A stretch of DNA of 64,000 bases. Origin: Camelus dromedarius. Its lineage: Eukaryota. Each line of letters opens with the position of its first letter. The first letter of the stretch is position 1. The notes beneath the pieces are model-generated. The model saw only the letters and a program-made list of their open reading frames with translations, did not search any database and was not told the DNA's origin. Of this stretch, positions 5,144 to 53,944 are shown one piece after another. A program made the position numbers and the translations under genes. Location of the stretch: assembly GCF_036321535.1 (NCBI RefSeq), contig NC_087440.1, positions 29,512,001-29,576,000 on the forward strand, given 5' to 3'.

Positions 5144-5159
5144 CAAGTCAAGAATACCA

Positions 5160-5937: not shown

Positions 5938-6591
5938 TTTTTTTTTTTCTATTTTTAAATTGGATTTTTATTCATATTACATATAATTATGCAATATACA
6001 TTTTATAGTTCACCCTGAACTGATTGCATTATTTTTATTAGGTTTTAAATACCAAAATATATAAAAGCTTCAATGTCAGAAATAAACTTGAATGCTATAT
6101 GTATTTTTTTCTTTTTTTCATATTAAAGCTTTTATTTATACTTACTATTATGATTAGCGTTATTAAATCCTTCTTTCATCATTTTTTAAAACATTTTTTA
6201 TTGAGTTACAGTCATTTTAAAATGTTGTGTCAAATTCCAGTGTAGAGCACAATTTTTCAGTTATATATGAACATACAAATATTCAGTGTCACTTTTTTTT
6301 TTTTGCTGTGAGCTACCACAAGATCTTGTATATATTTCCCTGTGCTATACAGTATAATCTTGTTAATCTATTCTACATATGCCTGTCAGTATCTATGAAT
6401 TTTGAAATCCCAATCTGTCCCTTCCCACCCCCTGCCCCCTTGGCAACCACAAGTTTGTATTCTATGTCTATGAGTCTGTTTCTGCTTTGTATTTATGTTC
6501 CTTTTTTTAGATTCCACATATAAGCGATCTCATATGGTATTTTTCTTTCTCTTCCTGGCTTACTTCACTTAGAATGACATTCTCCAGGAAC
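5938..6591 (-). mobile_element. Young camelid-type L1 3' end (about 6181-6591) plus about 240 bp of 3'-transduced sequence
   Basis: 18-bp TSD aagggatgc[c/a]catctctt at 5920-5937 and 6592-6609; poly(T) 5936-5948; L1 part nearly identical to 51350-51740. Confidence 0.8.
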
Positions 6592-7914
6592 AAGGGATGC
6601 ACATCTCTTAAAACCACCTTCTACCACAGCATAGTTACCCAAGCCAGACCGCTGCTGGGGCCTGGGAAGCAACATTCAAACATGCCAGCTCCATTAGCAC
6701 ATTCCTTGCTGTAGAATCAGACCCTACGAAGTATATCATGTTTCACATCCTAAGAAAAACCGAAGAATCTGCAAAAGTCCATTTTAAATATTTTTAATTA
6801 TTTTGGCAAAATGATTCAAAAGAATTGAAAGTGCTTAAAAAGAAATTAAAATCTTTATGGAAGGACCCAATGCAGTAAGGAGAGAAGAGGACAAAATCAA
6901 GCTCCTTAAATAATCAAGGGCTATTTATGGACACCTGGGCAGCTATTCTCTAGATTTCCTAAGCAGGGAACCACGGAGGTCTACGTGGAAAATACCACCA
7001 AAGGGAGTAAAGTTCTCCTTGTGGGAATTGTGGAGTTTTTTCCAAACAATGTAGTGTATTATACTTTGCCATTTGTCTATCTTTGTATTGAACTAAAAGC
7101 ATTCTCAGAGGAAGAAACTTGACCATACGATGGAGAATGACTTGCTAGCGGGAGTTTAAATGCCATGTGAACTTCTTTTGGAGGTAACGGGTATGTTTTC
7201 TAATTTCTTCTGAAACACCAAGAAATGGACTCCATTCATTGGAGATGGCACCCATGATGGTATCCCTACTGAGAAGGGCAAATCTTTCTGCTCCAGACAT
7301 TTGGGCTTTGTTTGAAATACTGCATTTTAAATTGCATTGGGAGAAAGTGAATATTTAGCAAAAAGTAACTGAAATAATTCAAGAACTGGAAAATCGATTG
7401 TAGGAGGGACTATGGTAGAATAAGGTAGGCTTAAGACAGTACTGCCATGAATCCAGTGCCTTCTGTTACATAAAACTGATCTTGCCTTATTCAAACCTTG
7501 TAATCACCTTACAAGATACTACCAAACCTAGAATTCACTGATACTGGGGGAATTTCATTATTCTGTGAATGATTCTAAGTGTATAAACCTAGAACAACAA
7601 AACTCAAATGATTCCTTGAATTTAAAAATGATAAATATCAGTGTATAGAAAAAAGGAGTATGAACAACAGGAGGTATAAAAATGGTTTCAAAGCCAGAAA
7701 GAGAAGCAAGGAAGGGGAGTAGAACTTTGAATAAACATCTGAGAAACTTACATCCTTGCACACCAGGAACTATGTGGATTCAAAGAAGGAACATGTTACC
7801 CTGCTATTCACCCCACCAGCCACTTCTTCATAGTCTCAGGCCAGCAAAATGGGAAATTCTCAGATGACCATCAAAGTTGCCCAGTCTGTGCACTAACAGC
7901 TTCCTTATAAGTCA

Positions 7915-8145: not shown

Positions 8146-11124
8146 ACATCTCTGAGATCCTATGAATAGTAAATACTAAGTTAAACAAAATTACACCCTT
8201 CTAGAGTTAGATGAGCCTTAGATGGGCTTGTTACACAACATTTTTAACATGATATGAAAAGGTCACATTTATACTTGGATTTCACTTTAGGATAAGGATG
8301 GGAAGTAAAGCCTACCAGCAGGATAATATTAGACAGTTCTGTTTTGCAAAAGGAGTTCTCGTGACAGTCCAGTTGTTTGAGTTTTCCCTTCTACTGCAAA
8401 GTGACAGCTCAAGGGAAAGATGAGATGCACACTGGTGGGTATAGGATCCACCTTGGCTTAGAAGATGCAGGCACCATAAGGGTCAGTGTCTCCCGTCACA
8501 ACTGCATCAGCACAGCTTCCAGGGTCCGTACAAGGGACATGCCCAGTCATCAGAGTCACGGCTCTAGGAGTGCCCAGACCCATGGCTTCTCACTAAGGAT
8601 TAACTGATCATTAATCATCTTACTCCAGATAAAAATTTATCCAATCATTTTTATCTTAAGAAATATTTCCTAGTAAAATAGTTGACATTCCACCATTTTT
8701 AGATTTTCAGTGAACAGAGCTAAGAAATTAACCCCAAATAAAATTTATTTAGAAAAAAACTATCGCAGTTACTTTAAACTAAGGAAAATAAAGTTTACTT
8801 TCCCTCAGATGCCTTTAACTTTCTGTTCCATCTCAAGTTTTGTCTTTTATCATTTTATTTCACATCCTGACACAACCAGACATTTATGTTTTAAGATAAA
8901 TTACTCTTCTTTGCTCATAATAAATAAAAACGTATCCATTATCTTGCATACACATTTGTACTTCCTTGCCACTCAGCGAGTAGAGTCTCAACCACCCATA
9001 TTAATTACAACTGTTAACCAAAGAAAAAGAGGAGATTGATACTCAAGAATTTCTGTCACACACAAGCATCTCAGCAGATGAGCAGTGAGCACACATTTTA
9101 GGAATGCATACAGTCACAGACATCACTTTTTGTTTCTTAAAGAGGTAAAAATAAACATACCTTAACATGGTCTAAAGGTAGCCAAACACCCTCTCAAACT
9201 GTTATCTGATAGTCATTCTACAATATAAAAATAGGAGGCAAATTAAAACTATGCCTGATAATCAATGTTTTCTTATCCTATCTTATTAAAAATTATCTAA
9301 GGTATCCAAAGATTTTTTCATTAATTATTAATTTAGTATTAGTCCATGGTCTTAAAGTTAACAAAGATATTGGAAATTACATATATGATGACATATTACA
9401 GAGCCACACAATGACAGATGATAACAAAAACATCTTCCAGAAATAAAATTCAATTTAATTGAACACATAATTTTACATTCTTAATAATGCTAAACATTAG
9501 AAGTAATGTCAGCTCATCTGATCAGTGAAACCAGTATAGCAAGTTTATTAAGTTCAGATTAACTAGTTCTTCTATGTGAAAACAAAGTCTTACCCCCCCC
9601 CCAAAAGCACACTTGCATTATATTCCGAACTTCTAAAATGAGGAAGAAAAACAAACCACTCTTTCTAAACCAAAATGACCACACCACTCTGATTTGTCCA
9701 GCAGTTTATTCTGAATACCTGAACTTGGATTCTTACATAGAAATGCTCTGAGCTAGAAGTTTTCTTTAGAAGTTTGTTTTTCTTAAAAGGCTAACACATT
9801 TAGTTTATAAATTCAATTCCTCTCTTCTCTGGAAGTTCCCTTATTTTAAATTTATGGAAGCATTTATTATTCTCTATAACTAATTGGAATTATATCTCTG
9901 TTAAATTGAAGACATTTTATTATCTGATTTATGAGTTTCTTCTTGGAGTAAGAAAATAGTTGACATTCATGTAAGGAGGATAAAATATTTTATAATTTTT
10001 AGATACACAGAGAATGTTCACCTTCAGTTTATAAATTTGAAGGTTAAAACAATTATGAACACAGATAACCTGTGAACACTCCTACAGAAAAAAATAAACA
10101 AAAAATGAACAGTGCAGGGAGGCACTCTCTTGGAAATGCATATTTATTTAATTTAAAAAAAAATGTTACCCATTGTTCAGGTAAAACATGTACAGACCAG
10201 ACGGCTCTGGCCCCCACTATTTCCCATTCACTCTGAAATTCAGAGCCCCCAGCATAAGAATCATGGAGAGATGCCTGCAAGTCTATTTCTCTACTTCACT
10301 TTTTGAAGCTTGCGCAGACTTCCAGATGCAAATACTGGACACACAGAGAGGATCTCAGTCTCTAATGGGAGAAAGAGATGACAGCCAGAGGTTTGCCCTG
10401 GCGACAGTACTGCTTCCATGACCTCTCACCAAAATAGATCACATCTTCCAGATTCTTGTCTGAAATATAATGCCCAAGAAAGGGGCCCTTATCTGTCTCC
10501 AAGTAGCAAACAGTCTTGACATATAGATACAGATCTTTCTAACTTTTGAAAAATAAATATATTTTAGACAGATAAATGACTAGCAATCTTTGACACATAA
10601 CTGTGAAAATGAAACTCATCTAGTTCTTCTGATTAATTATAAAACCTCTAGAATCAGACAAGTCAAGGAGACAAAAAAGATCTCAAAGGCAAACTTTTTG
10701 TGATGTTTCTTGATCCAAGGGCTCCTCTTGATCCAGTGCCGACTTTTTCAGACAAGCAGATCTTGACAGTTTCACGAGATGGGCTTGTTATATTATTCTT
10801 TTATTCTCATCTTTGTCTCATTTCCAAGTTTCTTATAAAATTTCTTAGTATAGCAATATCTAATTATATTGGTGTTTGTAAATTTATTGTCATCAGCAGG
10901 AAAACGTTTCTGAGCAACATCTCTGTAAGGAATGTGAAATGTTACAGTGCATACTTTCCAACTGCACCTAAAAGAACAGAATACACATATGAAAATTTTG
11001 TAAAAAACAATAGAAGGCAATTTTGTAAATGCTAAAAGAAGGCCTTGAACATCATTTCTCAAACTATATTCTATACAATATTAATCCTGGAGTTGCTCTG
11101 AGAAAAAAAATGAAAATGAAAACA

Positions 11125-11344: not shown

Positions 11345-12360
11345 TATTTTCATTCAACAAACATTTATTGAACTGCAAATATATGCTAGGCCCTGTGCTA
11401 ATGGTTACAGTAATTGTGGTTTTGAACAGGGTAGAAGAGGCGCCATCCTTCATGGAGTAAATATTCTAATATAGAAGATAGACAATGCACAAAATAATTG
11501 CAGATTTTGATAACTGTTATGAATGAATAAAATAGGGTAACATGAGAGCAAGTGAGAGGGGCCAACTTTAGATGTCGTGGTGACAAAAATACCATGGACA
11601 AGGGGGAGTATGGCATAAATTGGAATAGGTAGAATTCAGAACCTTCAGAGTCTTATAGGTCATGGTGAGGAGTTTTAACTTTATTGTAAGAAGAGTGAAA
11701 AGAATTTGAAAGAATTTTTTTAAGTTACTGAAATTATTTTTTAAATATTCGTATACAATTACTCTGGAAGGATCAAATAGGGGAAAAAGGAAAGCAGGTA
11801 ACAGCAAGACTGTTTGCTACTTGGAGACTGATAAGGACCCCTTTCTTGGGCAAAAAAGACTGATAATAGCTTCCACCAGTGCGTTGTCAAAGGAAATAGG
11901 CATAAACGGATAGATTAGATATTTTTACAAGATTAGTCATTTTTAAGCATGGGCTAATGTGAAAGCAGTAGAAATGAAGAGTAATGGACAGACTAAAATA
12001 AAATTTAAGCAATAGAAGTGACAAGGATTGCCTTAATTCTAGGAGTGGAAAACTAAATTGTTTAGAATGACTATCATCAGAAAAAAAGACTGATAAAAAA
12101 ACATCAAAAAGCTAACAAGATAGAGGTAAACAACACTGTTGGATTCTTTGGGTAATTCAGAACCAAGAGAGGTAAGCAATACACTGGAGCACCAAACCTT
12201 TATTTTCCCTGAGAGCATTCCTAATTGTGGCAAATTTGGGATTCGTTTCAGTAGTTTTGCAAAGACAGAAGTTAGGGTCTTCTCCAGGTGGGGTCCTTAT
12301 AGGGAGATACTCTTCATCTCAAGCTGGGACACAAAGAGCTATAGCTTCAGGATAAGTGGA
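11345..12360 (-). mobile_element. L2 remnant
   Basis: ttcattcaacaaacatttattga tail and typical L2 body (cttataggtcatggtgaggagttttaactttatt). Confidence 0.6.
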
Positions 12361-13480
12361 AAACAGAACTAAGCATGCTTCTCATTACAGTTTTAGGGAA
12401 CTGTAGGGAAGGGGTGCCTTGATAATAAGTAGAGAGGAAGGAAAAAAAAGTCCTTAAGTAGCTGGGGCTATGGAGAGACCCTCATAAGAAATCCAAAAAC
12501 AGTATCATAATGGATTTACCTTATGCACTAGAAACAAAGGTCTCACATTCTTTAAGTTGTCCCTTTTTTCTTCCTCACAAGAAAGAAGCGTATTTTGTAA
12601 ATGTTCTACATTTCTCTGGTGATTGATTATATGGCTTAGTTTTACAGAATAAAGGACAATTCATAATTAGCTTTGAGTTCAGGAGACACAGCCACATGCT
12701 CATTTCACACAACTACTTATTTTCCCTCGTTCCTCTCCCAAAGGCATCTAATCTAATCACAGAAGGTAAAGGCAGATGCTGGCCTGAGGGACTAGCCTGC
12801 CCAAAGGACTACTGAGTTGAGAAGCCATCTTTTTAAATACACAAGGAAACAAATCTTTGGAATTACTGACCAAAAATAGAGAATAGAGTCCTCCCCCAAA
12901 CTCCATTTTTAGATAAAATTTTTTATGTAGATGATACTTGAATCCTTTCTTCCAAATTAAAAATTGGTAACTCCTCCCAAAGTCTCATCTACGTCACCCT
13001 CCAGACATCTCCCCTGACGAGACGCTAGCAGTCACTGCAAAGTTAATTGTACAAAAGGGGGTTTGTTTCTCAGTGAAGGTTCTGGGAATCCACTTTTGAG
13101 ACTGAAGCTGAGAGAAAGGACTCAGTTCCTCCTGAGCATAGATCCCAGGTCTGCAGAAATCACATCTTGTCCCTATCCTTTTTTTCCCTCAAGAAATAAC
13201 CCTCATTTTGTTGTTGTTGTTCTTGATTTTCCTGGTAAAAGACCTGAGGGACAAAATCCAAATAGCTTCGGTTCCTGGGCAAAGCTGTGGTGTTTGTCAT
13301 TAACTGAAGTAAGTATAGATGAAACAGTTTTCTAAAACCTTAATTTTTCTAGCTTTTCCACAACTCCAAGTAAGTTGCAGTATGCTCTACTTTGAAAATA
13401 AAAGTTGAATTATTACTAGTAATTCATAGAAGATGATGTCAAACACAAGTAAAAGCACTGTTTCTCCAGTTCCATTTTAG

Positions 13481-13565
13481 GAGCTGTATCTGCACAGGTT
13501 TCAGAGAGACACAGAACTGAAGACAAAAGCTACAGGAAACAGTTACCATCCACTAGGAAGTCCAG
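13481..13565 (+). other. Predicted non-coding 5'UTR exon of the OR at 16002
   Basis: Acceptor tccattttag|g at 13480, donor cag|gtacgt at 13566, 85 bp with no ATG; further GTAAGT donors at 13309 and 13370. Confidence 0.4.
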
Positions 13566-14631
13566 GTACGTTAAGAAATATGGAAAAGCAGATTAATTTG
13601 GGGATGTTTCACAAATTTGTTTTAAAACTAAAAGAATACTAGCTGTTTTGTGTTCTACTTTTGCTTGCACGTTTATTTAATTGTCTAATTAGTGAGTAGC
13701 CAGAGCTGGAGTAGACACAGTAACGCTTTTATCTGATAAACTAGATTCTGTGGTATCACTGCAAGCTGAAAGAAGCAGACACAGAAAGAAAACTGGGCCA
13801 AGCCAGGGTAATGACTGGCAGGGAGAAATTTGGAGTTCTTCTGAAGGAAGTGTCAGACATAAATGTGATCAATACCAATACCAGAATGCTCCCCAGTAAA
13901 GGTGAAGTATTCCTTTACCTTAAGTAAGGAAATCAAATTAAACTACTGTAGGTCTTTCTTTTTCCAAGGTTGCTATATGTTTACTTCATTATATTGATCT
14001 CGTTGGAAACCAGATCATTAAATGTTTTGGAAGATCGTCAACTCAGTCTAGACCAGAATACCAACCCCTGTTTCTTCTTAAATGCCAAGTCAGTAGTCTC
14101 ACTGGCTGCTTCCTTCCATTATGTTTCCCTTTTTCCAAGGACTTCATGGAGTCTTTTTCTTCCAGTAATACCTTTAGAGAAATTTGAATTAAAGAATCAA
14201 GTGCCATAAGGGGACCATAAGAACAGAGAAAAGCAAAATTGCTCAAAGGAAACGTGGGTCCAAAAATGCTGTGTTACTGAGTGGTTTAGTCTTGAGTGCA
14301 AAGGAGAGTATCGGGGCTACATCTACCCACCCTGGGACCTTGGCCAAGGGTGTCTGCACAGCTTATGCATCTGGAGTGTGGCCTCAGTTGATGATTAGAG
14401 CACTTGGCGGCACAGGAAATCAAGTCGTTCTTGGAAAGCAAATTGGGCGGTCCCTTGCTTTTGTTCCCGAGTGTCTTCTCAGTACTTTCATGTGTCCTCT
14501 AAATATTCACATAGGTCATTTGAGGACATTTCCTTTTTCTTTGTGGACAACTGAGAAAAATGAAAAGGTTTCAAAAGGGGGCCAGCACATGTGTATTTCT
14601 GAGGTACCTGGGTCAACTTCAGAATCTCACA

Positions 14632-20416: not shown

Positions 20417-20730
20417 GTGATTTTAAAAGGGATTGTTTCTTTACTTTCTTTTCCTGCTAATTCTATGTTAGTGTAACAAGTGCAACTGATTTCTGTATGT
20501 TACTCTTGTATCCTGCTACCTTGCCGAAGTCTTGTATCAGCTCCAGTAGTTTTTGTGTGACCCCTTGCGGATATATGATTTATACATACTTTCTCTCTTC
20601 TGTAGATTTTATTTACTTTCTTGATTGAATACTTTGACACACATGAGATTTTAGTTTTCATAAAGTCCATTTAATCTGTTTTTTCTTTTGTTAACTGTGC
20701 TTTTGTGTCATTTCAAAGAAACTATTGCCT
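20417..20730 (-). mobile_element. Two L1 ORF2-region fragments
   Basis: 20417-20575 aligns by eye with 53186-53340; the following piece resembles older L1. Confidence 0.6.
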
Positions 20731-21389
20731 ACAATAAATAAATAACTAAATAGTAAATAATAAATAGAACTTTGCTCTGGGAATGTACTATATATTTATA
20801 GGATTGTATCATCTGAATTTTTTTTTTTTTTTCATTCATAGCCTGGGGAAACTGAAGTCCTGAGGAGGAGGGTGGTATGAGATGTGACTAGCAGACACAG
20901 ATCACATTATGCAGGGCCCTTAGGTCTTGGAAAACATTCACATTTTTTATTAGATCCTAACAATAATGGATAGCCTTTGGGAGTTTTTATAGTATGTCTG
21001 TTTGTTATATGTAAAATGCTGTGTTTTACATAAATTATGAATTCTGTCCTTAATTTATCATGAGAATGAGGTGGTATTTTACAGAAAGTGGCTGAGAGAA
21101 GTTATGCTCCTTCTCAGAAATACTAACACCATCCACTGCCCTCTTTTCATGGGCCTGAGTTTTAAGTCCATGGGTTCTTCTCTAAGCTTCTAAGTTTTAA
21201 TCATGACAAACTCTTTCCTTAATTTCTCCAGCCCCAGAGCTGGTACTTTTTTCTTCAGTTGAATTTTTTTTTAAATAATCTCTCAGTGTTTTAGAATGAG
21301 CATTATTTTTAGTTCTTCAATACCTAGTTAACCATCTCTAAATGATACTATTGTATTAAAAGAACTGGTATAGTTCTTGTCTCCTAATT

Positions 21390-24008
21390 TAGAAACTGAT
21401 AACAAGAAATTGGTCCCAGGAAACAGACCCTCAAATACATGGCTTTGAAATTAGCTCGGTCTTGTCTTTGGGAGTGACCTCAGTGCTGAGCTCCCTGCCG
21501 ATGTGAAATAGGATGCTAGTCACCCCACTGCAGGCAAGCAGTGGCATCATGACTGTCATGTTGATTATATTAAAGTGCCAACTGGAGCAAGGGACTATTG
21601 CGTCTGACCAGTTTGTTACTGATGATAAATACAGGGAATGTGGCATGTGGTAGATTCTTCTGAATGGTTACAGAAAGAAAGGACAAGCTCAGATTTTTAA
21701 ATGTTCATTTCAAGTTATAGTCTGAGAACCAGAAAAATTCTATGGCAGCTCTTAAATAATATCTTGTTTATTGTAGTTACAGACATAATCTTGCTGAAAT
21801 CAGTCACAAAAGTTAATTTTGTAGGTTGCAGAATTTTAATTTAATTTGTGAAGTTTGTGAAATTAAGGCTATTGCTTAGTAAGGAATGGGAATTACAGGG
21901 AATTAAATATGCACACAGTCTTCCAAACTTCCAGAGACGTGTGCATTTTTTTTTTTTTAATGCTGGTTTTCTAGGAGTTGCCCTTGGATCAAATTAGCCT
22001 ATTTTTCAGGCAGTATTTGTTCAAAGGTGTGATTATATCCCTAAGGGTACAATGGTTAGTGTTCTAGTGGGCTCTTGTAGTTATTAAATACCAAAACTTG
22101 GGCCTCAGTGATTGTGTGATCTAAGCTACCCATCTGCTGGGTCACAACCTCCTCAGAGCTTTCCGAGCATAACCAAACTATCCCCTATACTCATGGAGGA
22201 AGGGAGAGAAGAAAGAGGCAGACCCCTCTTGGTTAGTAGCTGCAGGTTTAATAAGCAAAGGATCTGACTCCCCAGGGCTTGTCTTGGGTGGCTGTAAGAA
22301 GAATAGATTTCTGCACCCACCCCACCAAATCATAAAAGTTTACGTAGGGACCTTAGCGGGGCTCAGACATGCACTAAGTCCAGGTGATCTCAAGACCACA
22401 CTACTACACGCAAGGCTGTGTCCTTGGGACAGCTTACAGCGCAGGGCAGGCAAGTGGAACGCAGTCCAAGGACAGGGGAGGGAAAAAATAGCCTCCGATT
22501 GCCTTGTTCCAGTTTGGGGGTCAAACTGGTGTTCACTTCTTCCTAATGACCTCCCTCAACACCATCATGAAGTGGATGCTGTCTCATTCTTCAAGCCATT
22601 AAATGGAGATGCAGAAACTGCATTATATCATCAAGGGAAATGGTACACAGAAGATCAGGCTTAGCAGGTCCAGCAGCTTAAGAACATTGAATTAGCTTAT
22701 GACTCAGTTCCTTCAACAGCTTCTACTGTCCAATTGCCTCCTATCCCTCAGTGTACATACATAGAGAATTCTGTATAACCAGTGGATTAAAATTTTTCAG
22801 TTTGGGCCGATTTTACAGCTGGTTTTGTATGATATGTTGGTAAAAACTAGAAGAGAAAGTCTGCAGCTGTACAGCCCCAGTTTAGTGAAGTATTATGGTT
22901 AAATATTACTTATGGTTAGTACTATGATTATGGCCATGAAAAACAGTGATGAGGAGAAATTCTCCCTTTGGGAAGAAATGCAAGCAGTGCATGCAGTTGT
23001 CCGCTTTGTTTGGCTAGAAGCATCGATGTATATTCATTCATGAAAAGTTACTAGTGGTTTGGTTAGATAGTCAGGGCTTAGAGTAAATAGAATGGAAGTC
23101 TGGTGGTAAGAATTCCTGGGGAAGAATTCTGGGAATAGATCTCTCAAAATGGGCACAGATTATGAAAATATATGTGACCTATGTGAATGCTCACCACAGG
23201 GTATCCACTACAGAGGAAGCTTTAGAAATCAGGTAGGCAAATGACAAGTTCTGCGCATGCTAACCTTTTTTTTTTTTTTTTTTTTTTGAGCCACCCTCAG
23301 TGCTTGCTTAATGGGCTTCTGTACAAAATGACCAAGGTCAGAGATCATGTTTTTTTAAATAACAAGGAATTCCTCACAAAAGTTCTGTTTATCAGTATTC
23401 ACAAGCCCCTTTAAGGCTGAGCCACTAACATGGCACAGTTTACTGTGGGGATCAGCCAGTCACCTGGAGGCAGGTCAACTATACTGAGACCACCCCATCA
23501 TGGAGGAAGTAGAATTTTGACTTCACTAGAATAAACATGTATTCTGGAATGCATTTTTTCCCTAACTATAATACTTCAGCTTGCACTACCATCCATATAG
23601 TTAAGAAACACTTTACCACAATCATGTATTCTGCACAACATTGCATTTGATCAAGAAATTTAACAGTAAAACAAATGTAGCAATGGGCTTATGACCGTGG
23701 AATTTACTGATCTTAACATATACTTGATCACCCATAAACAGCTGGTCTAATAGAATGGTGGAATGGCAAACTGAAGACTCCTTCATGGGTCTTTTGGGAG
23801 ATGAGATCTTCATTCTCTGATTGTGGAATCAAGATGCAGAAGTGGCACTAGATCCTCGCACCATTATACCTAATAACCCACTCACCAAAGTTTTGCTTCC
23901 CACCCCTACCATTTTGAGCTCTGCTGGGTCAGAAGGGATGCTTCCACCAGAGCAGAAAATATTTTCATTAAATTGGAAATTATGAATTATGACTGGCTAT
24001 GTGAGCTT
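21390..24008 (+). mobile_element. Decayed ERVL (class III) internal sequence: gag, RNase H/integrase and dUTPase-like remnants
   Basis: gtgaatgctcaccacaggg, ggggatcagccagtcacctggaggcagg, ttgatcaagaaa, gaatggtggaatggc, gggatgcttccaccag match ERVL pol tracts; no ORF survives. Confidence 0.75.
22113..22535 (-). mobile_element. Probable solo LTR nested in the ERVL remnant
   Basis: GC-richer block interrupting ERVL similarity, with a minus-strand ATTAAA; boundaries approximate and no clear TSD. Confidence 0.45.
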
Positions 24009-24184
24009 GGCTAGAGAATGTGTATAACTACAGCTCTTCTAGATTAGTATCTGTGAGGATGGTAGAAACTGGTGAGAATTAAGGGGAATTTGCCTTGCTG
24101 ATAAATGTGTAAGTGACTAAAATGTTTGAGTTGAGAGCATGGAATACTTGGATTTTGTTGTGGCAAATTATATTACAAGGCAAT

Positions 24185-24384
24185 ATAAGTGATTTACCTG
24201 ATTTCTTTAAGAAATTCTTCTTTCTTTACATTCTTTCTCTATGCTTCTGAGTTCTCAGTATAAGGGGAGGGGAAACTACTGCTCAGGAGGAGGTAATGAT
24301 TTTCCTTGTTCACCTGCTCTCCTTGGCACCATCCTTGACATTTCAAAGGATAAAAAAGCTGCAACACCCCAAAAGTAAAACAAA
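24185..24384 (+). repeat. Left arm of an inverted repeat pair (partner 28125-28318)
   Basis: Reverse complement aligns by hand at about 90% identity to 28125-28318. Confidence 0.9.
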
Positions 24385-25824
24385 GCTAATTTACACTGCA
24401 TAATCAAATTAGCTTGCAAATTATGCCATTTCCAATATGTTTTTTTGTTAGGTTGATAAAGATACCCTGGTGTTTTATTCTTTGCATACTGTACTTTTTC
24501 ACTTTCTTTGTAGAAAATAATTTTCTATTGTGTTGTGTAGTGTCATTTAATGAATGAATACTCTTGAAAATAAGTTTATCTTTGAATCCTTAAGTGCAGG
24601 GAAAAAATGAGGTTGTGTTATCTTGAGAACTTTAATTCATATTTCTGGGCCTAATTTTCTTATTCATAATTTGAGAATAATAATAAGTGCATTTAAAATA
24701 ATATGTATAACATAATGGCTTAGAGTAGCCATTCAAGGATGATAAATACATTATTGTTTTTCTGCTGTTTTTTTGTATTTTGTTCCCACAGTAAGAGAAA
24801 TAAAAACTGCATCTGTGCCATGTTTTTATTTTAGGAATTTCATTGTTGATTCTTACAAGTGAATTTTAATTCACTTAATTTATAATTTTAAATTATAAAT
24901 TAAAGAAAGTAAATTTTATTTATAATTTGAATTTTCAGGAGTTTGTTTTTAACGATAAAGGTTATACTTGGATAAACCATGACTGATAAATATTATGGGT
25001 ATTTGAATGGAAAGATTGGCCTCTATATATACATTAAAATGTATTTGTTGAATGTTGATTATATATTAACCACTACTAAGTTTCAGTAATTAACTAGGTA
25101 AGGCATAGCCCCTTAAGGAGCTTGTATTTCAAGACTTTTACACAAATGATTAATAATAATCATTTAAAATATAAATATTACTCCTTGAGATTGAGATAAA
25201 CAAAAGAAATATCATTAGGTTTTACTTTTTTTTACACTTTTATTTAAGAGTTAATGGAAACCAAACACAGAATAACCTCTGATGTTATTCTGACCTCCAC
25301 TATTATTCCTATGTAGTGTACACTGTTATTTCATTCTCTCTTTATTTCTCCCCTACAGCTTTTCATTATTATTTTGATAGAGAGTTAAATAATAATTCGG
25401 TTTTCTCTTGAAAAGAGGTTAAGTGAAAGATTTGACAGAAGGAGTCAGTGTCACAGAAATGCTCTCAAATTGGAGTTAGGAGAAAATTCAAGAGAAGTTT
25501 ATTAAGATGCTACCCATCAGGATGGATGTATGACTTGGTAGAATGAATTCAGCTTCTCATTTAACATAGTTAAAGGCACAGGAAGACTGATTAGATAATC
25601 CCCACACAAAGAAGGATTATAAGTATTTGAATTTTATGGAAATATTTCATGGTGCTCTACTGGTTGATTAATAAATGTTGAAATTCCTTAAATTTTATTA
25701 ACTCTATTCCTGTACTTGGAGACAGGCGTAACATGTAGATATAAACTGAGTGCCTAGAATTCTCAACCTCTTTTATAGGTCAGTATATTGTCAACTGAAG
25801 TGCTTACAGTGAGGTTTCTGGGCA

Positions 25825-26763
25825 TTAAATATTTCCCTTGGAATGCACGTAGTAGTTTCTGAATCTCTTTACAGCATTTTTAATCTCTTTATTTCTCAGG
25901 GTATAAATGGCTGGATTCAGGAGAGGTGTAATAACAGAGTAAAACACAGCAAGAAATTTATCCACCCAGGTGATGCTGAGTGGCCACACGTAGATGAAGA
26001 TGCAGGGCCCAAAGAAGAGCACCACCACTGTGATATGGGCAGTGCAGGTAGAGAGGGCCCTGGAAGCACCAGTTTTAGAGCTTTGGCGAACAGCGAGAAG
26101 AATATATGTGTAGGATATCAGCAATACTATAAAGCAGGTCATGGCCAGTACCCCACTGTCAGCATTCATCAATATTCCCAAGTTATAGGAATCTATGCAG
26201 GCAAGCTTGATTACCAGTGGTATATCACAGAAGAAGCTGTCAATTTCCCTGGGGCCACAGAAGGGCAGTCGCATAATCACAACCATTTGACTCATGGCAT
26301 GCACAAAGCCAATGGTCCAGGAAGTCGCCACGAGCCCAAAGCTTTTTTGCAGATTCATGATGGTCAAATAGTGGAGTGGCTTGCAGATGGCCACGTAGCG
26401 GTCATAGGCCATTACCACCAATAGCACCATCTCACCTCCTCCAAATAAATGCACAAAGAGGATCTGGCACATGCAGCCTCCAAAGGAAATAATCTTGTTC
26501 TCCGTGACAAAGTCTGTAATCATCTTAGGGGTGGTGACTGAAGAAAGCCACATGTCAACAAAGGACAGATTAGCCAACAAGAAGTACATGGGGGAATGCA
26601 GATGAGTGTCAATGATGATTAAGACCATGATGGCAATATTTCCACATACAATGAGCAGGTAAAGCGTAAAAAATATCAATAAGAGTAACACCTGCATATC
26701 CCATGACCAGCAAAGTCCCAGAAGCACAAATTCTGACACTACAGACAGATTTCCTTCAACCAT
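25825..26763 (-). CDS. Olfactory receptor family 4 (OR4K/OR4F/OR4L-related), intact, 312 aa
   Basis: LHSPMYFLLANLS, MAYDRYVAICKPLHY, RALSTCTAH, PLLNPAIYTLRN; NLS glycosylation site; minus-strand acceptor ctgtccttctctctag 26 nt upstream of the ATG. Confidence 0.93.
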   Translation of the reverse strand: MVEGNLSVVSEFVLLGLCWSWDMQVLLLLIFFTLYLLIVCGNIAIMVLIIIDTHLHSPMYFLLANLSFVDMWLSSVTTPKMITDFVTENKIISFGGCMCQILFVHLFGGGEMVLLVVMAYDRYVAICKPLHYLTIMNLQKSFGLVATSWTIGFVHAMSQMVVIMRLPFCGPREIDSFFCDIPLVIKLACIDSYNLGILMNADSGVLAMTCFIVLLISYTYILLAVRQSSKTGASRALSTCTAHITVVVLFFGPCIFIYVWPLSITWVDKFLAVFYSVITPLLNPAIYTLRNKEIKNAVKRFRNYYVHSKGNI

Positions 26764-26784
26764 TTTATTCAGCGTGTCCTCTAA

Positions 26785-26806
26785 AATACCTAGAGAGAAG
26801 GACAGA
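26785..26806 (-). promoter_or_regulatory. Splice acceptor of the second OR4 coding exon
   Basis: Pyrimidine tract plus AG at 26791-26790 on the minus strand. Confidence 0.65.
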
Positions 26807-27411
26807 CTGTCAGTGAGTGGGATGAGAAAGGGTACCTTGTTTTTAGAATTCAGTTGAAATTCTATCGAATTGAAATTTAAATTTCATTAAAGTTAGCATC
26901 TTTACCTGTAAGTGAAAAGTATAACTGGGAAGACAAATCTTGGCAAAATAATCATGGCATTATGCCCAAAAGAGAAGTAAAATGCCTAAAACTGGCTTTC
27001 GAAGATAGGATTCTTATGCGTGATTAATTGAGAGGGTGCTCTCACAAGGAGGAAGTGAGAAAGGCGAACAGCAAAATGCAAGGCTGAGAAAAGATTGTGG
27101 TGTCACCTAGAAATTAGCTTCAGTCCACTACTCCAGTGAAGAGAATCTGGGTAGGGCACCAGCAATTGCTGTTATAACTTAATAACTAAAATTTAAGTCA
27201 TCTACTTAGGAAAATGATGGTAAACAGATACTGAAATCCAGAACAAAGGACATGGCACAAAATTACATTTTCTCTCTATTAAGCATATGATTCCTTCAAG
27301 CTTCAGGTGAACCTCTTCTATAAGACATCATAAAATTAAATGTTTACTTTATTACTCTAAAATATATGTTGGAGCAACCTTTCTGAAGGAAGCTATATAG
27401 TAGGTCATATG

Positions 27412-27582
27412 GTGGGGGAGGATATAGCTCAAGTTGTAGATTGCATGCTTAGCATGCATGAGGCCCTGGATTCAGTCTCCAGTACTTCCTTTGAAAATAA
27501 ATAAATCTAATTACCTCCCCCTAGCCAAAATAAAATAGTTAAATAATACAATAATAAACAAATCTTTTAAAAAAATTTTAAA
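27412..27582 (+). mobile_element. Camelid-type tRNA-derived SINE
   Basis: tRNA-like head (tagctcaagttgtag..ggattcagtctcc), A-rich tail, TSD-like agtaggtcatatg (27399-27411) / agaaggtcatgtg (27583-27595). Confidence 0.8.
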
Positions 27583-28124
27583 AGAAGGTCATGTGATAAA
27601 AACCATGGCATGATAATTCAAATGCAGTATCAGGCACATAATTTATCATTGGTTAGGATTACAATTAAATGGAATTCACTTAGTAAACTAAATCCATTAC
27701 CCACCCACCCCAAAAAAAAGTCAGTGGAGAATTATGTGAAAGAGGGACTAACCAAAGGGGAAGGTCACTCAGACTCAGGTTCTGACTTGATCAACTCGAA
27801 TGGAAGCTCCTTATAACTCAAGCTTATCAACAGAAAATATTTACCTTCAATTATATCAATGGGTGTTTTGAAATACTGCCAAAAATTTAAAATATATCTT
27901 TTCTAAAATGAGAATAAGCTACAGATGTGTAAGCAAAGTATGTCTTTGACTGTTAGTACTGACTGAACATGAAGTTAAAACTTCAGAGATCACCAGCTAT
28001 TCAAGTCTAAATATAAAAACATATTGCCTATGTTTATCCTTAAGTAAATTGAGAATTCCTCTTAAGCTGGATGGTAGAAAGATAATTGCATCTCTCTCTT
28101 CCCCCTTTATTTATTTCCCTTGGT

Positions 28125-28318
28125 TTTGTTTTACTTTGGGGGTGTTGCAGCTTCTTTTATCCTTTGAAATGTCAAGGATGGTGCCAAGGAGAGCTGGTGA
28201 ACAAGGAAAACTGTTGCCTCTTCAGTAGTTTCCCACCCGTTATACTGAGAACTCAGAATCATAGAGAAAGGATGTAAAGAAAGAAGAATTTCTTAAAGAA
28301 ACTAGGTAAATCACTCAT
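28125..28318 (-). repeat. Right arm of the inverted repeat pair
   Basis: For example atcctttgaaatgtcaaggatggtgccaaggagagc is the exact reverse complement of the left-arm tract gctctccttggcaccatccttgacatttcaaaggat. Confidence 0.9.
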
Positions 28319-28749
28319 TTGTGGTAAAAAGGGGAACATTTAGTAATATTCTCACAACGTACAAACATATTGCCATAATGGAAATTTGTTTAATTTCTAA
28401 AGAAAATATTTTGATATTGCACCCGATAGATTTATGTCCCCTGAGAAACTTGAATAGTGTGATCTTTATCTTGAAACTTAACTTTGTCAAGATAAATCTT
28501 TCCAGGATTAGTTTTTAGTAATTAGTTTTGCACCTGCTGAAATAAGGAACATAGACGACAGCTAATAAAAGCAGAATTTCAACTGTGTTTGAGACAAGAA
28601 TTTGCTAAAAGATGTATGTGTACATTGCTGGAGAACAGTGTACCAATAATAGCAACTCATATTTTTGCATCAGTTTTGAAATTGTTAATATTCATGATAC
28701 TGGTAGACTAATTACTCTATTAATATTAACCCAGTATTTAGGATAAATA

Positions 28750-28950
28750 GTAGAATAACCATGGACTTAGTCAGATCTAGTCTGAACTCTAACTGGATTA
28801 CTGTTGACCCTGTGACCTTGAGCTTAATTTATTTGTTTCCATTTCCTCGTCTGTAGAAAGAGAACACTCAATCTAATAGACTTGCTAAGTCAGAAAATAC
28901 ACAGAAAGCATTCAAAAGTTTTCTGGTACTCAGTGCCTGTTTAATAAATA
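28750..28950 (+). mobile_element. MIR
   Basis: ctgtgaccttgagc..tttcctcgtctgtagaa. Confidence 0.55.
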
Positions 28951-30072
28951 TATTTATTTCCCTTCTTAATTCATTAAAATGCAGTTTAAAGTCCGAAGCT
29001 TACTGGCAACAATCTCAGTGAGCAGCCAGCCACCTTCTGTAAGCAAGAGACATGCAGCCCCTTTCTTTAAAACACCGACTGCTTATATTTCTCTAAAGTG
29101 ATAAGCAGATGCTTAGCAACTCTGTAGGATGTAGGTGCAAGGGCGATAGCAGACTTGCTTCTTGCTTCCCATGAGCTTAACAACTTTTTCACCTTTCACG
29201 TCTGCTTTTGTCTAGGAGGGGTTTAATATTTTAAGAAGACCTACAAGAGCAGTAGCACATTCTTTTAAAGCACCTTTGAAATTCTGTAACTCAGGGTGAA
29301 TTTTCACCCAAAAAACATCAGTGATAACTTTAGGATTAGTAACACTGAAAAATTAGGAGTTACTCTTTTTGAACTATTTAAAATATAGCCACATATATTT
29401 CATCCCTATCTAGATGTGATGTCCTTCCATTAACTTTTTTGATAAGAATAGTACTAAAACTGTGAGATTCTCAACATGTATAATTTTACAAAGAGAAACT
29501 TGGACTTGGAGAATGTAATAGATGGCCTGAGATACACGCTGGGTGAGGTACACAGAGAGATAGTTCACCTTCCTTCCACTACCTAAAGCTGCCTTCCTTT
29601 TTTCTCAGGTTATGAGTTTTAATCCTATTAAATCCTATTAATCCGATAGTAACTGAGTTTTATATCACTTCTCATTGGATATGTAACTTTTTAAACTTTT
29701 ATCTCTATGCTAAAAGTTATCTTAGTATGCAGTACTCTCTCTGATATAAAATACTTTATCTTCTTAAGTGGCAAGGATCATTTAGCCAAGATAGCTGGAG
29801 GTTGCTAATAACCAGAGCTGTGACATCCCAAGGCAGACCTGGGAGCATCTCTGAGGCACAGCATCATGGTGGTGTGTACACGGTTGTTAAAGAGACCATA
29901 GAAATTCTAATAGGAATAGAATGGGAGGAGAAAATCCATAAATTATCTCTTTAAAGGTCAGAAGCTAAACAAGCCACACATAAATCCAAGCATAGAGGCC
30001 ATGCGTGAAACAGATATACAAATATTTTTTAAATTATTGTTTTTTAAAAAGAGTCACAAAGAATATGAACTA

Positions 30073-30310
30073 ACTTACTAGACACAAATTTTCTCTAGGA
30101 CCAGGTTACTTTTCACTCTTCTCTTCTGATAGATGCTTGAGATAACACCCACTGCTGAGCAGAGGCAGTATCTACGGAAGAAGTCTCCCTCAGCCTGACA
30201 TACATTCACCACCGGAAGGAATCCCTTGGGTGAAATTTTCCTATTCTCTGTTTTGGACAGAACAAGAATCATGAAAATAATTCACATTGGACATCTCTTG
30301 GGGACTTCTT
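30073..30310 (-). promoter_or_regulatory. Candidate first exon/promoter of the second OR4 gene
   Basis: Minus-strand donor CTA|GTAAGT at 30078; O/E-like TCCCTTGGGT at 30222-30231 and a weaker site near 30293-30304. Confidence 0.35.
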
Positions 30311-30769
30311 TACTAAGAGTGATAACTTTTGTATATTCTGGAAATCAGAACAGGGAGACAAGAAAAATCACATGTAAAGCAACTAAGCATTAAACATCAG
30401 TGGAGTTTTTAATTATTTTTCATTTAACCTGTAAGTACTAAGGAGACGTCTTCTGCAGTTAATCTCCAACTAGATCAAAATAATCAGATTCAGTTAACGT
30501 TTAGTTCCAACTGCAAGAAAAATCATATTCTGACCAATGTGATGTATGACCACCAATAGAAAACCCTGCCACGGATGGCATGCTCTACTGCACGCCTAAT
30601 GTTCTATAAATAGACAGGTGATCTTGGTCAGTTGGCTAATTTGTTTCAGTATTATCTATGATTACTTAAGATCCTGCTAGTTATGCACTGGCTGTCAAAT
30701 TTACTAAGATACCAGATTTTTTAAAAAGAACATTGATAATAGAGTAAAATACATTTATTTTGATCTTTT

Positions 30770-31945
30770 AGATTTTTTAAATAACTTTATTGTAGTGTGA
30801 TTAACATATGACAAACTGCATATATTTTAAGTGTACAATTTGATGAATTTTCATATATGTATTCGACCATGAAAACATCACAGTCAAGACAGTGAACACA
30901 TCCATCAGCCTCTAAAAGCTGTTTTATGTTTCTTGATAATCATTCCCCTTTCCCATCCCTCCTTACAGCCTCCCTGCCCAGATGACTGCTAATCTGCTTT
31001 CTATTACATTACTTTGAATTTTCTAGAGTTTTATAAAAGTTGAGTCATGTAGTGTGTACTTTTCATTGTCTGACTTCTTTCACTCAACATACTGATTTTG
31101 ATATTTATCATGTTTTTGTACGTACCAGTAGTGCATTCCTTCTTATTGCTGAGTAGTATTCCATTGTATGTATATGCCACAATTTGTTAAGCAATTCATC
31201 TGCTGAGGGACTTTTCAGTTGTTTCCAGTTTTTGGCTCTTATAAATAAAATTGCTTTGAACATTTATGTATTTATATCTACGTATGACTTGAATCCTTTA
31301 AATTTTATTGACACTTACATCGTGGCCCAGAATATGGCCTTACTTAGTAAATGATCAGTGTGCACTTCAAAAGAATGCGTATTCTGATGTTTTTGGACGA
31401 AGTGATCTATAAAGATGAATTATGTCTGATTGGTTCATAGTGTGTTTCAGGTCTTCTACATCTCTGATGAGTTTTTGTCTGCCCGTGCATTCCCATCAGC
31501 AGTGAATGAGAGTTCGTATTGCTCTATGTCCTTGTCAGCATTTGATGTTGTCAGTGTTTTGCATTTAGTTACTGTAATAGGTGTGAAGTGATAGATGGTT
31601 GTTTTAATTGTAATTTCCTAATGATACATGATGTTGAGCATCTTTTCCTATGTTTTTTGCCGTCTATAGATATTCTTTAGTGAGATTTTTGTTTCAGGTT
31701 TTTGCCCATTTTTTAATTAGGTTGCTCGCTTTCTTACTGTTGAGTTTTAAGGGCTTCTTGTGTGTTTTAGATAGCAATCCTTTATCAGCTATGTCTTTTG
31801 AAAATATTTTCTCCTAGGGTGTCTTGTATGCTCATTCTCTCGCGTCTTTCACAGAACGGAAGCTTTTAGCTTTCACAAAGTCCACTTTTCAATGATTTCT
31901 TTCATAGAATATGCCTTTGGTGTTGTATTTCAAAAGTTATTGCTG
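30770..31945 (-). mobile_element. Fragmented old L1 (L1MA/L1MB-like)
   Basis: 3'UTR (aactttattg..gtgtacaatttgatgaatttt) followed by ORF2-region pieces. Confidence 0.7.
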
Positions 31946-34248: not shown

Positions 34249-35196
34249 ATGAATACCTCTGAGCCAGATTCCAGCTTCCCTTTTGTAAGAGAATTTATAC
34301 TCCTAGATTTTTCTTGTGAGTGGAAAATTCAGATCCTCCTCTTCTCACTCTTCCTTACAACATATGCTCTGACCATAACAGGGAATGGGTCTATTGTTTG
34401 TGCATTATGGTGTGACCAGCGACTCCACATCCCCATGTACATATTCCTGGGTAATTTCTCCTTTCTAGAGATCTGGTATGTCTCTTCTACAGTCCCCAAG
34501 ATGTTGGTCAACTTCCTCTCAGATAAAAAGACCATCTCCTTTGTTGGATGTTTCTTCCAATTTTATTTCTTTTTTTCTTTGGGAACAACTGAATGCTTAC
34601 TTTTGGCCACCATGGCCTTTGATCGGTACCTTGCTATCTGCCACCCCTTGCACTACCCTAATATCATGACTGGGCATCTCTGTACCANNNNNNNNNNNNN
34701 NNNNNNNNNNNNNNNNNNNNNNNNNNNNNNNNNNNNNNNNNNNNNNNNNNNNNNNNNNNNNNNNNNNNNNNNNNNNNNNNNNNNNNNNNNNNNNNNNNNN
34801 NNNNNNNNNNNNNNNNNNNNNNNNNNNGTCTCTGCTCCAAAAACCCAACTGCTTTGCTACACTCTAAGCTCATTAGTTATCTTTGGTAACTTCCTCTTCA
34901 TCCTTGGGTCCTATACTCTTGTCCTGTTAGCAGTGTTGCGAATGCCTTCAGCCAATGGGAGACGGAAGGCCTTCTCTACCTGTGGGTCCCATTTGGCTGT
35001 GGTATCCCTCTTCTATGGCTCTCTGATGGTGATGTATGTGAGCCCAGGACTTGGACATTCTGCTGGGATGCAGAAAGTTGCAACTTTGTTCTATGCTATG
35101 GTGACCCCACTCTTCAACCCCCTCATCTATAGCCTACGGAATAAGGAGATAAAGGCAGCCTTGAGGAAAGTTCTGGGGAGTTTCAACACAATCTAA
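34249..35196 (+). CDS. OR11H12: Olfactory receptor OR11H12/OR11H1/OR11H2-like, 315 aa from ATG 34249, with 140 Ns internally
   Basis: Matches recalled human OR11H12 over long tracts (TTYALTITGNG, EIWYVSSTVPKMLVNFLS, CYTLSSLVIFGNFLF, YVSPGLGHS, KEIKAALRKVLGS). The ORF-track start 34225 is a TTG inside the acceptor; frame is preserved across the N-run. Intactness inside the Ns cannot be seen. Confidence 0.85.
   Translation: MNTSEPDSSFPFVREFILLDFSCEWKIQILLFSLFLTTYALTITGNGSIVCALWCDQRLHIPMYIFLGNFSFLEIWYVSSTVPKMLVNFLSDKKTISFVGCFFQFYFFFSLGTTECLLLATMAFDRYLAICHPLHYPNIMTGHLCTXXXXXXXXXXXXXXXXXXXXXXXXXXXXXXXXXXXXXXXXXXXXXXXVSAPKTQLLCYTLSSLVIFGNFLFILGSYTLVLLAVLRMPSANGRRKAFSTCGSHLAVVSLFYGSLMVMYVSPGLGHSAGMQKVATLFYAMVTPLFNPLIYSLRNKEIKAALRKVLGSFNTI
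34688..34827. other. N-run, 140 nt, inside the OR11H12-like CDS
   Basis: Counted from the sequence. Confidence 0.95.
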
Positions 35197-40382: not shown

Positions 40383-41368
40383 CTGAGAAAATATTTGCAG
40401 AGACCGACAAGGGATTAATTTCCAAAATATACAAACAGTTCATACAGCTTAATATAAAAAAAAAACCCAATCAAAAAATGGGTAGAAGATCTAAATAGAC
40501 ATTACTCCAAAAAAGACATACAGAAGGCCAACAGGCACATGAAAACATGTTCAACATCGCTAACTAAACTACAATGAGGTATCACCTCATACCAGTCAGA
40601 ATGGCCATCATTAAGAAGTCTACAAATAATAAATGCAGGAGAGGATGTGGAGAAAAAGGAACACTCCTACACTGTTGGTGAGAATGTAGTTTGGTGCATA
40701 GCCAATATGGAGAACAGTATGGAGATTCCTTAAAAAAAACTAAAAATGGAGTTACCATATGATCAAGCAATCCCACTTCTGGACATATATCCAGAAAAAA
40801 CTATAACTCAAAAAAGGTACATNNNNNNNNNNNNNNNNNNNNNNNNNNNNNNNNNNNNNNNNNNNNNNNNNNNNNNNNNNNNNNNNNNNNNNNNNNNNNN
40901 NNNNNNNNNNNNNNNNNNNNNNNNNNNNNNNNNNNNNNNNNNNNNNNNNNNNNNNNNNNNNNNNNNNNNNNNNNNNNNNNNNNNNNNNNNNNNNNNNNNN
41001 NNNNNNNNNNNNNNNNNNNNNNNNNNNNNNNNNNNNNNNNNNNNNNNNNNNNNNNNNNNNTATTGAGTAAAGTAAGTCAGACAGAGAAGACAAATATCAT
41101 ATGATATCACTTATTTGTGGGATCTAAAAAAGTCACAAATGAACTTATTTACAAACCAGAAATAGACTTACAGACATAGAAAACAAGCTACGGTTACCAA
41201 ACGGAGAAGGGGTGAGGGTGGGGGAAAAATTAGGAGTTTGGGATTTGCAGATAACAAACTACTATGTATAAAATAGATAAACAGCAAGGACCTACTGTAA
41301 AGTTCCTACAAGGAACTATATTCAATATCTTGTAATAACCTATAATGGAAAAGAATCTGAAAAGAATA
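40383..41368 (+). mobile_element. 5'-truncated L1 (ORF2 C-terminus plus 3'UTR)
   Basis: cacctcataccagtcagaatggccatcattaagaagtctacaaataataaatgc; 3'UTR with ggggtgagggtgggg. Confidence 0.85.
40823..41060. other. N-run, 238 nt, inside an L1
   Basis: Counted from the sequence. Confidence 0.95.
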
Positions 41369-51979: not shown

Positions 51980-52220
51980 NNNNNNNNNNNNNNNNNNNNN
52001 NNNNNNNNNNNNNNNNNNNNNNNNNNNNNNNNNNNNNNNNNNNNNNNNNNNNNNNNNNNNNNNNNNNNNNNNNNNNNNNNNNNNNNNNNNNNNNNNNNNN
52101 NNNNNNNNNNNNNNNNNNNNNNNNNNNNNNNNNNNNNNNNNNNNNNNNNNNNNNNNNNNNNNNNNNNNNNNNNNNNNNNNNNNNNNNNNNNNNNNNNNNN
52201 NNNNNNNNNNNNNNNNNNNN
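51980..52220. other. N-run, 241 nt, inside an L1
   Basis: Counted from the sequence. Confidence 0.95.
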
Positions 52221-52965: not shown

Positions 52966-53126
52966 NNNNNNNNNNNNNNNNNNNNNNNNNNNNNNNNNNN
53001 NNNNNNNNNNNNNNNNNNNNNNNNNNNNNNNNNNNNNNNNNNNNNNNNNNNNNNNNNNNNNNNNNNNNNNNNNNNNNNNNNNNNNNNNNNNNNNNNNNNN
53101 NNNNNNNNNNNNNNNNNNNNNNNNNN
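52966..53126. other. N-run, 161 nt, inside L1 ORF2
   Basis: Counted from the sequence. Confidence 0.95.
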
Positions 53127-53600: not shown

Positions 53601-53944
53601 NNNNNNNNNNNNNNNNNNNNNNNNNNNNNNNNNNNNNNNNNNNNNNNNNNNNNNNNNNNNNNNNNNNNNNNNNNNNNNNNNNNNNNNNNNNNNNNNNNNN
53701 NNNNNNNNNNNNNNNNNNNNNNNNNNNNNNNNNNNNNNNNNNNNNNNNNNNNNNNNNNNNNNNNNNNNNNNNNNNNNNNNNNNNNNNNNNNNNNNNNNNN
53801 NNNNNNNNNNNNNNNNNNNNNNNNNNNNNNNNNNNNNNNNNNNNNNNNNNNNNNNNNNNNNNNNNNNNNNNNNNNNNNNNNNNNNNNNNNNNNNNNNNNN
53901 NNNNNNNNNNNNNNNNNNNNNNNNNNNNNNNNNNNNNNNNNNNN
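53601..53944. other. N-run, 344 nt, at the L1 5' truncation end
   Basis: Counted from the sequence. Confidence 0.95.

Follow-up and report, generated by a model that had tools for sequence, protein, structure and literature searches.

The 64,000-nucleotide stretch of Camelus dromedarius DNA analysed here (C5:29512001-29576000, hereafter the window; coordinates given without a prefix are window positions) contains an intact olfactory receptor (OR) gene of the OR4K14 type that is bracketed by an inverted repeat. We found that the two arms of this repeat differ in age. The arm upstream of the gene, arm B, is ordinary ancestral sequence, and the arm downstream of it, arm A, is a reverse-complement copy of arm B that took the place of older sequence. 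Arm A most likely arose by one microhomology-mediated template-switch or templated-insertion event on the camelid stem. The feature is an ordinary structural mutation of a known kind and of unusually large size. The elements on which the argument rests are listed below, where W is the window copy of the locus and C and D are its two paralogues on C5.

25825-26763, minus strand: receptor gene, intact, single-exon and OR4K14-like (312-aa open reading frame, ORF)
24185-24389, plus strand: arm A, derived inverted copy of arm B (repeat finding and blastn); replaced ~300 bp of ancestral sequence
28120-28318, minus strand: arm B, ancestral template, ordinary sequence on the upstream side, 1.36 kb 5' of the ATG (single direct copy at the equivalent place in outgroups)
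23637-24184, no strand assigned: outer flank of arm A (alignment with D, rhinoceros, otter and pig is collinear)
24390-24731, no strand assigned: inner flank of arm A (alignment with D and the outgroups is collinear)
24188-24190, plus strand: outer junction microhomology AGT (alignment of target site and source)
24388-24389, plus strand: inner junction microhomology AA, 0-2 bp (alignment of target site and source)

The inverted repeat is real and its arms are confined to one paralogous family

The inverted repeat was resolved into three adjoining blocks (24185-24274/28229-28318, 24287-24355/28155-28223 and 24352-24389/28120-28157), each of which is 89-91% complementary. A sensitive blastn search of the whole window with 22000-30500 returned one match, 24185-24384 with 28318-28125, at 89.1% identity over 201 columns (E 1.8e-69), and no homology was found outside the arms on either side. 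The unambiguous copied tract of arm A is 24191-24387. Arm A is located 1.44 kb from the stop codon of the receptor gene and arm B 1.36 kb from its ATG. When the 2.3-Gb genome was searched with arm A, the sequence was found at three places only, namely arm A itself, arm B (89%) and C5:29411723-29411912 (88%). The third copy is 124 kb from arm A, in the equivalent upstream stretch of paralogue C, and all three copies fall inside one paralogous family; at this copy number, the arm is not a dispersed repeat. The junction alignments revealed no target-site duplication at arm A, and no poly(A) tract was found at the arm.

The independent assemblies of Bactrian camel and alpaca contain both arms at the same positions as in dromedary, and 18 non-source runs, drawn from six or more studies, contain 0.92-0.96 of the sampled words of a 296-bp stretch across both arm-A junctions. 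The arrangement is therefore not an assembly slip. A sequence-only reading of this DNA had described an intact coding exon between reverse-complement arms of ~90% identity by hand count, with sharp ends 1.44 kb downstream and 1.36 kb upstream of the coding sequence and with no target-site duplication, poly(A) or known-repeat identity. This description held throughout: the exon is an OR4K14-like 312-aa ORF, the distances are correct, and homology stops at the arms. The same reading had set two possibilities against its own account, a multi-copy dispersed arm and a local misassembly, and neither is the case, given the genome-wide copy number of three on the one hand and the two other camelid assemblies and the 18 runs on the other.

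Arm B is ancestral and arm A derived

Comparison loci were fetched through the proteins returned by a search with the receptor, and each was numbered such that the gene lies at 10001-10939 on the plus strand. The loci L012 and L013 were judged orthologues of the window by the presence of the same neighbouring genes. The arms were distributed in these loci as follows.

L012, alpaca, window orthologue: both arms; B at 8461-8665, A inverted at 12581-12377
L013, Bactrian camel, window orthologue: both arms; B at 8445-8643, A inverted at 12579-12375
L011, alpaca, orthologue of paralogue C: one arm, upstream, direct
L010, pig: one arm, upstream, direct
L014, rhinoceros: one arm, upstream, direct
L015, goat: one arm, upstream, direct
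L016, otter: one arm, upstream, direct

In the single-arm species, the arm is embedded in continuous alignment. The pig copy of the arm is split by a pig-specific insertion of ~260 bp with an A-rich tail (8422-8678 of the pig locus), which looks like a PRE-1 short interspersed nuclear element (SINE).

The site of arm A was compared in the same manner. Its flanks, 23637-24184 and 24390-24731, align to paralogue D at ~78%, and between them D contains ~300 bp of sequence, here called the filler, which is unrelated to the arm and single-copy in the genome. Homologues of the filler were found at the arm-A site of pig (14272-14584; 73%, E 6e-53), rhinoceros (12384-12671; 80%) and otter (12334-12613; 78%), and the alignments of rhinoceros with the window break exactly at 24388 and 24184. 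Among the species compared, arm A is present only in dromedary, Bactrian camel and alpaca. Because D, pig, rhinoceros and otter all have the filler or a homologue of it, the filler is ancestral and arm A derived. On this comparison, the filler represents the ancestral Laurasiatheria state, which an inverted copy of arm B replaced in the camel/alpaca lineage. The tract thus stands in place of ancestral sequence between flanks that are still collinear with D, pig, rhinoceros and otter. Arm B is the older of the two arms, being ancestral upstream sequence, and arm A a camelid-only patch.

Arm A groups with arm B and is older than the camel/alpaca split

An alignment and a maximum-likelihood tree were made from 12 copies of the arm. 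The tree has the form ((A,B) 95/90, C) 93/93, with pig, goat, rhinoceros and otter outside this group. In addition, A and B share four derived sites that are lacking in C and all outgroups, and no derived site is shared by A with C or by B with C. Because A is sister to B and the two have these four derived states in common, arm A was copied from arm B in cis, at a time later than the W/C duplication. It is the reverse complement of neighbouring sequence on the same chromosome (89% to arm B, 3.7 kb off). Paralogue C was also considered as the source, on the strength of a 'GCT' common to A and C at the right end, and was rejected; this 'GCT' is ancestral and is also found in rhinoceros.

The stems of A and B have branch lengths of 0.02-0.04, compared with ~0.005-0.015 for the tips. 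From ~13 substitutions, we roughly infer that the event would be about two to three times as deep as the camel/alpaca split, on the camelid stem. Arm B of all camelids also contains a tight cluster of changes at 28155-28200, with an extra 6-bp deletion in Camelus that is absent from alpaca. Taken together, the cluster and the deletion have the look of one or two complex mutations, not of independent substitutions.

Junction sequences and a probable microhomology-mediated template switch

At the outer junction, the window reads ...ATAAGT|GATTT, the target site as seen in D ...ATAAGT|TGCAT and the template ...ATGAGT|GATTT. Beyond the shared AGT, a wider match of ATAAGT in the target flank with ATGAGT in the template holds at 5/6 positions. 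At the inner junction, the window reads GCTAA|TTTACA, the template GCTAA|GGG and the target of rhinoceros and pig CCCAA|TTTACA. The inner target in D and otter is CAG|TTTA (CTCAG/CCCAG), so that the AA match hangs on the ancestral base.

What has been shown is which state is ancestral and which derived, where the copy came from, when it arose relative to speciation and how the junctions read; the following course of events would connect these points. Where a fork stalled or a break occurred, ~1.4 kb downstream of the receptor gene, a DNA 3' end at ...ATAAGT would have left its template. It would then have re-annealed by AGT to the opposite strand ~3.9 kb off, in the upstream region of the gene. 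After ~200 nt had been copied there, the end would have returned to its original template ~300 bp past the leaving point, with 0-2 bp of microhomology (AA). The outcome would be the loss of 300 bp and, in their place, upstream sequence in reverse-complement copy, and hence an inverted repeat around the gene. A stalled fork and a resected break, as the source of the 3' end, would look alike in sequence alone. We infer the enzymology, whether replicative switch or break repair, together with the selective neutrality of the product.

The reading as a template switch, or as an event of the MMBIR type (break-induced replication mediated by microhomology), is favoured because an inverted copy of nearby sequence fills a deletion, as in published events, with microhomology of 3 bp (AGT) at the outer junction and of 0-2 bp (AA) at the inner one. 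Three observations weigh against it. The tract of ~200 nt was taken from ~3.7-3.9 kb away, far beyond the catalogued short-range switches of tens to hundreds of nt (PMC7954356). The right-hand microhomology is at most 2 bp and is contingent on the inferred ancestral base. Furthermore, arm A of dromedary and alpaca differs at 2 of 205 positions, against ~5.5 differences expected from the flanks (Poisson p ~0.09 by our own estimate), and this leaves room for mild constraint on arm A.

The same end product, a deletion with a foreign patch and little homology at the junctions, would be expected if a break downstream of the gene had been patched by a reverse-transcribed fragment of a local transcript, that is, with RNA or complementary DNA (cDNA) as the template. 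Some RNA runs contain about half of the words of the locus, and the region may be transcribed. However, the arm ends lie off splice signals and there is no poly(A) tract; moreover, the template lies in cis, 3.9 kb off, and the inverted orientation is a hallmark of DNA strand switching (PMC8421209). We therefore regard a cDNA patch as improbable. An exonic nature of the arm itself was also considered and rejected: AG precedes the arm in B and C with no GT after it, and the ends are without usable splice signals.

The repeat is probably a neutral scar

It was further considered that the repeat might now be functional and under selection, as an antisense copy of a promoter, as a double-stranded RNA (dsRNA) stem around the coding exon or as a substrate for inversion switching. 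The repeat has been kept in both Camelini and Lamini with the gene intact, and arm A is 99.0% identical between dromedary and alpaca, compared with 97.3% over the 10-kb surroundings. This difference, however, corresponds to the 2 against ~5.5 changes given above and is not significant. The relative-rate test did not reveal a slowdown of A against B, the derived changes polarised with outgroups being 5 in A and 8-9 in B (p 0.4-0.6). Part of the excess in B is made up of the clustered change and the Camelus-specific 6-bp deletion. Conservation of the arm across mammals does not exceed that of its neighbours: in 50-bp bins, identity to pig, rhinoceros, goat and otter was 0.75-0.83, as in the surrounding 2 kb, without a conservation peak at the arm. 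In addition, the arms have diverged to 89%, and their orientation is identical in all three camelids. Selection on the repeat is thus very improbable, and the inverted repeat is probably a neutral scar that has drifted since the event. There is a slim chance of co-option, in which the upstream copy, lying 1.4 kb past the stop codon and facing the gene, would drive antisense transcription or, in a long primary transcript, form a 200-bp dsRNA stem with arm B around the coding exon. Camelids would then have their own extra level of control over this single receptor, maintained by selection over tens of millions of years.

Two related proposals were tried and dropped. Slow evolution of arm A was suggested by three-way private counts (A 5, B 15, C 16), and it shrank to 5 against 8-9 when outgroups were included. 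The arm as a conserved promoter block was rejected on its cross-species identity, which equals that of its neighbours.

The location of the receptor reflects an older duplication

20559-31678, no strand assigned: duplicated unit of ~11 kb, common to paralogues D (direct) and C (inverted), from alignment to the paralogues

Paralogue D is located at C5:29.234-29.246 Mb in direct orientation and paralogue C at C5:29.409-29.415 Mb in inverted orientation. The matches of W to C are 25419-27373 (91%), 27636-29028 (78%, including arm B), 29256-30833 (83%) and 20559-20925 (76%). Paralogue C has a single arm, at the position of arm B, and is without a counterpart of 20926-25418. Collinearity of paralogue D with the window, in the same orientation, covers 20559-31678 but not 26920-28483, the block that contains arm B. 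Pig, rhinoceros and otter are collinear with the window over the whole unit, including the blocks absent from C and from D, and these gaps are therefore deletions in C and D. The edges of the duplicated unit lie ~3.4-3.6 kb outside the arms. Since D remains collinear with otter for ~1.8 kb past the point where window homology ends, D is the likely parental locus, with the window copy as an ~11-kb duplicate. When a tree was made from the 3' portion of the gene, W, C and D came together in one camelid clade (95/94) with no resolved order within it, and this tree accommodates the gene body both with and without W/C gene conversion. The upstream-flank tree joins C to D (100/99) and places W close to the artiodactyl base.

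The sequence-only reading had proposed that the arms mark a 4.1-kb rearrangement cassette, inverted by staggered breaks or inserted as a unit, which brought an OR4 gene among OR11 genes. The inverted repeats do bracket the whole gene at nearly symmetric distances, and the flanking of the receptor by ORs of other families was confirmed, the family name OR11 aside, as it has 40-44% amino-acid identity to four ORs of the window. However, collinearity with the window in one orientation extends through both arms and past them in paralogues D and C and in pig, rhinoceros and otter, and alpaca and Bactrian camel likewise show collinearity in a single orientation; relative to this order the segment is not inverted. 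Because the orientation inside and outside the arms is one and the same against both paralogues, the segment between them was neither inverted nor inserted as a unit. Furthermore, one stretch is duplicated rather than one per breakpoint, arm B predates arm A, and the unit that was in fact duplicated is ~11 kb long with its edges at ~20559 and ~31678. The cassette is thus hardly credible, and the arms do not account for the placement of the receptor. Its location among ORs of other families reflects the older ~11-kb segmental duplication, and the arms arose later. Of the rearrangement origin proposed, the part that survives is that a rearrangement made the repeat, template switching having been among the sources named; inversion or insertion of the 4.1-kb unit does not.

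Two further accounts of the arms were weighed. The ancestral filler could be an old and decayed inverted copy of the arm, forming a quasi-palindrome that the camelid event 'corrected', as the multiple aligner set a shared 8-mer and a few G/A runs of filler and arm opposite each other; this has very little credit, since local alignment of filler and arm in either orientation in four species was no better than with dinucleotide shuffles (z 0.2-1.4). Two insertions of a low-copy transposable element, or of its terminal inverted repeats, would fit the sharp ends and the similar length of both copies, and the chance of this is next to nil with only three copies in 2.3 Gb, all in one paralogous family, with arm B in continuous orthologous alignment with four non-camelid species, and with arm A substituting for sequence rather than adding to it; neither target-site duplication, nor dispersed copies, nor simultaneous arrival of the two ends was found, arm B being ancestral and arm A camelid-only.

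The genes of the two paralogues were also inspected. In dromedary, the gene of paralogue C (6320-7000 of the fetched locus L006, C5:29.413 Mb) is a pseudogene with one in-frame stop (..LLTVH*SSK..), and its alpaca orthologue (P0121, L011) is an intact 312-aa gene. The pseudogenization of paralogue C looks like a loss on the Camelus side. The gene of paralogue D (L008/L009, C5:29.241 Mb) carries the annotation of a 306-aa OR4K14; near its N-terminus, 4 aa and 2 aa are missing through two in-frame deletions. On its upstream side, paralogue D has also lost ~1.4 kb, its arm copy among them, and on the downstream side it has acquired an insertion of 2 kb (D index 12093-14064).

The receptor gene and other features of the window

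The ORF at 25825-26763 is an intact single-exon gene for a seven-transmembrane receptor of ~310 aa, and its nearest named relatives are OR4K14. The protein search was made with the C-terminal residues 131-312 only (182 aa). Over these residues, the receptor is 99% identical to 'olfactory receptor 4K14-like [Camelus dromedarius]', and the top matches across mammals are 'olfactory receptor 4K14-like' with Pfam 7tm_4 (PF13853). Within the window, the receptor has 54% amino-acid identity to the OR at 4196-5146, compared with 40-44% to the four others.

27409-27587, no strand assigned: SINE-like dispersed repeat between the gene and arm B (3902 first-look candidates genome-wide, 81-88% identity)

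This repeat has thousands of genomic copies, is unrelated to the arms and is the lone dispersed element in the 1.6 kb around arm B. An AT-rich near-palindrome of 36 bp (24853-24925; 78% complementary with a 1-nt spacer) is situated in the interval from arm A to the gene; it is of low complexity and probably a product of chance. Two RNA-seq runs labelled 'reproductive system metagenome' (X15 and X16) contained 0.52 of the sampled words of 23800-28700 (4.9 kb); these could reflect transcription of the receptor locus outside the nose or carry-over of genomic DNA. The window has five N runs (34688-34827, 40823-41060, 51980-52220, 52966-53126 and 53601-53944), totalling 1124 bases, none of which falls in the feature.

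Comparison with known systems

The locus is of low biological interest and of some methodological interest for the range of template switching. It is a natural case in which the ancestral state, the template, the junctions and the lineage have all been recovered. On the reading favoured here, template switching in the mammalian germline would be able to write an inverted copy of ~200 nt from a template almost 4 kb away, a range well past what current detectors scan. Inverted repeats that flank a gene can thus arise de novo, without a transposon or an inversion, and those that bracket genes in olfactory-receptor clusters are not to be taken as boundaries of cassettes.

DNA transposons and miniature inverted-repeat transposable elements with terminal inverted repeats resemble the present arms in having two inverted arms with sharp ends. 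The present arms differ from them in the absence of a target-site duplication and of a family of copies, in the unequal ages of the arms and in that arm B is single-copy and orthologous across Laurasiatheria. Staggered-break inversions, as studied in Drosophila, leave inverted duplications at the breakpoints, and they are similar to the present case in that inverted repeats bracket a chromosomal segment. Here, by contrast, the segment is not inverted, a single sequence was duplicated, and a deletion accompanies the copy.

The four-point model for template switches includes the order 1-4-3-2, a common pattern that gives a single inverted repeat (Walker et al. 2021, PMC7954356). In the catalogued short-range switches, tens of nt are copied from a template tens to hundreds of nt off (PMC7954356; Loytynoja 2022, PMC9435742). 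Like arm A, which fits the 1-4-3-2 order, such switches overwrite the stretch between the leaving and the return point with a nearby reverse complement and so create a new inverted repeat. Arm A falls outside the short-range class, with ~200 nt taken from ~3.7-3.9 kb away and 300 bp lost. Templated insertions ascribed to MMBIR or to fork stalling and template switching (MMB-TI) are inverted relative to a nearby template and have microhomology at their junctions (Osia et al. 2021, PMC8421209). Those catalogued were somatic or germline variants, and their templates lay no farther than 100 bp away, the limit of the detection tool (PMC8421209). Arm A differs from them as a fixed germline event, tens of millions of years old and with a template in the kilobase range, and it agrees with them in its inverted orientation and its nearby template, with microhomology of AGT at the outer junction and of 0-2 bp at the inner one.

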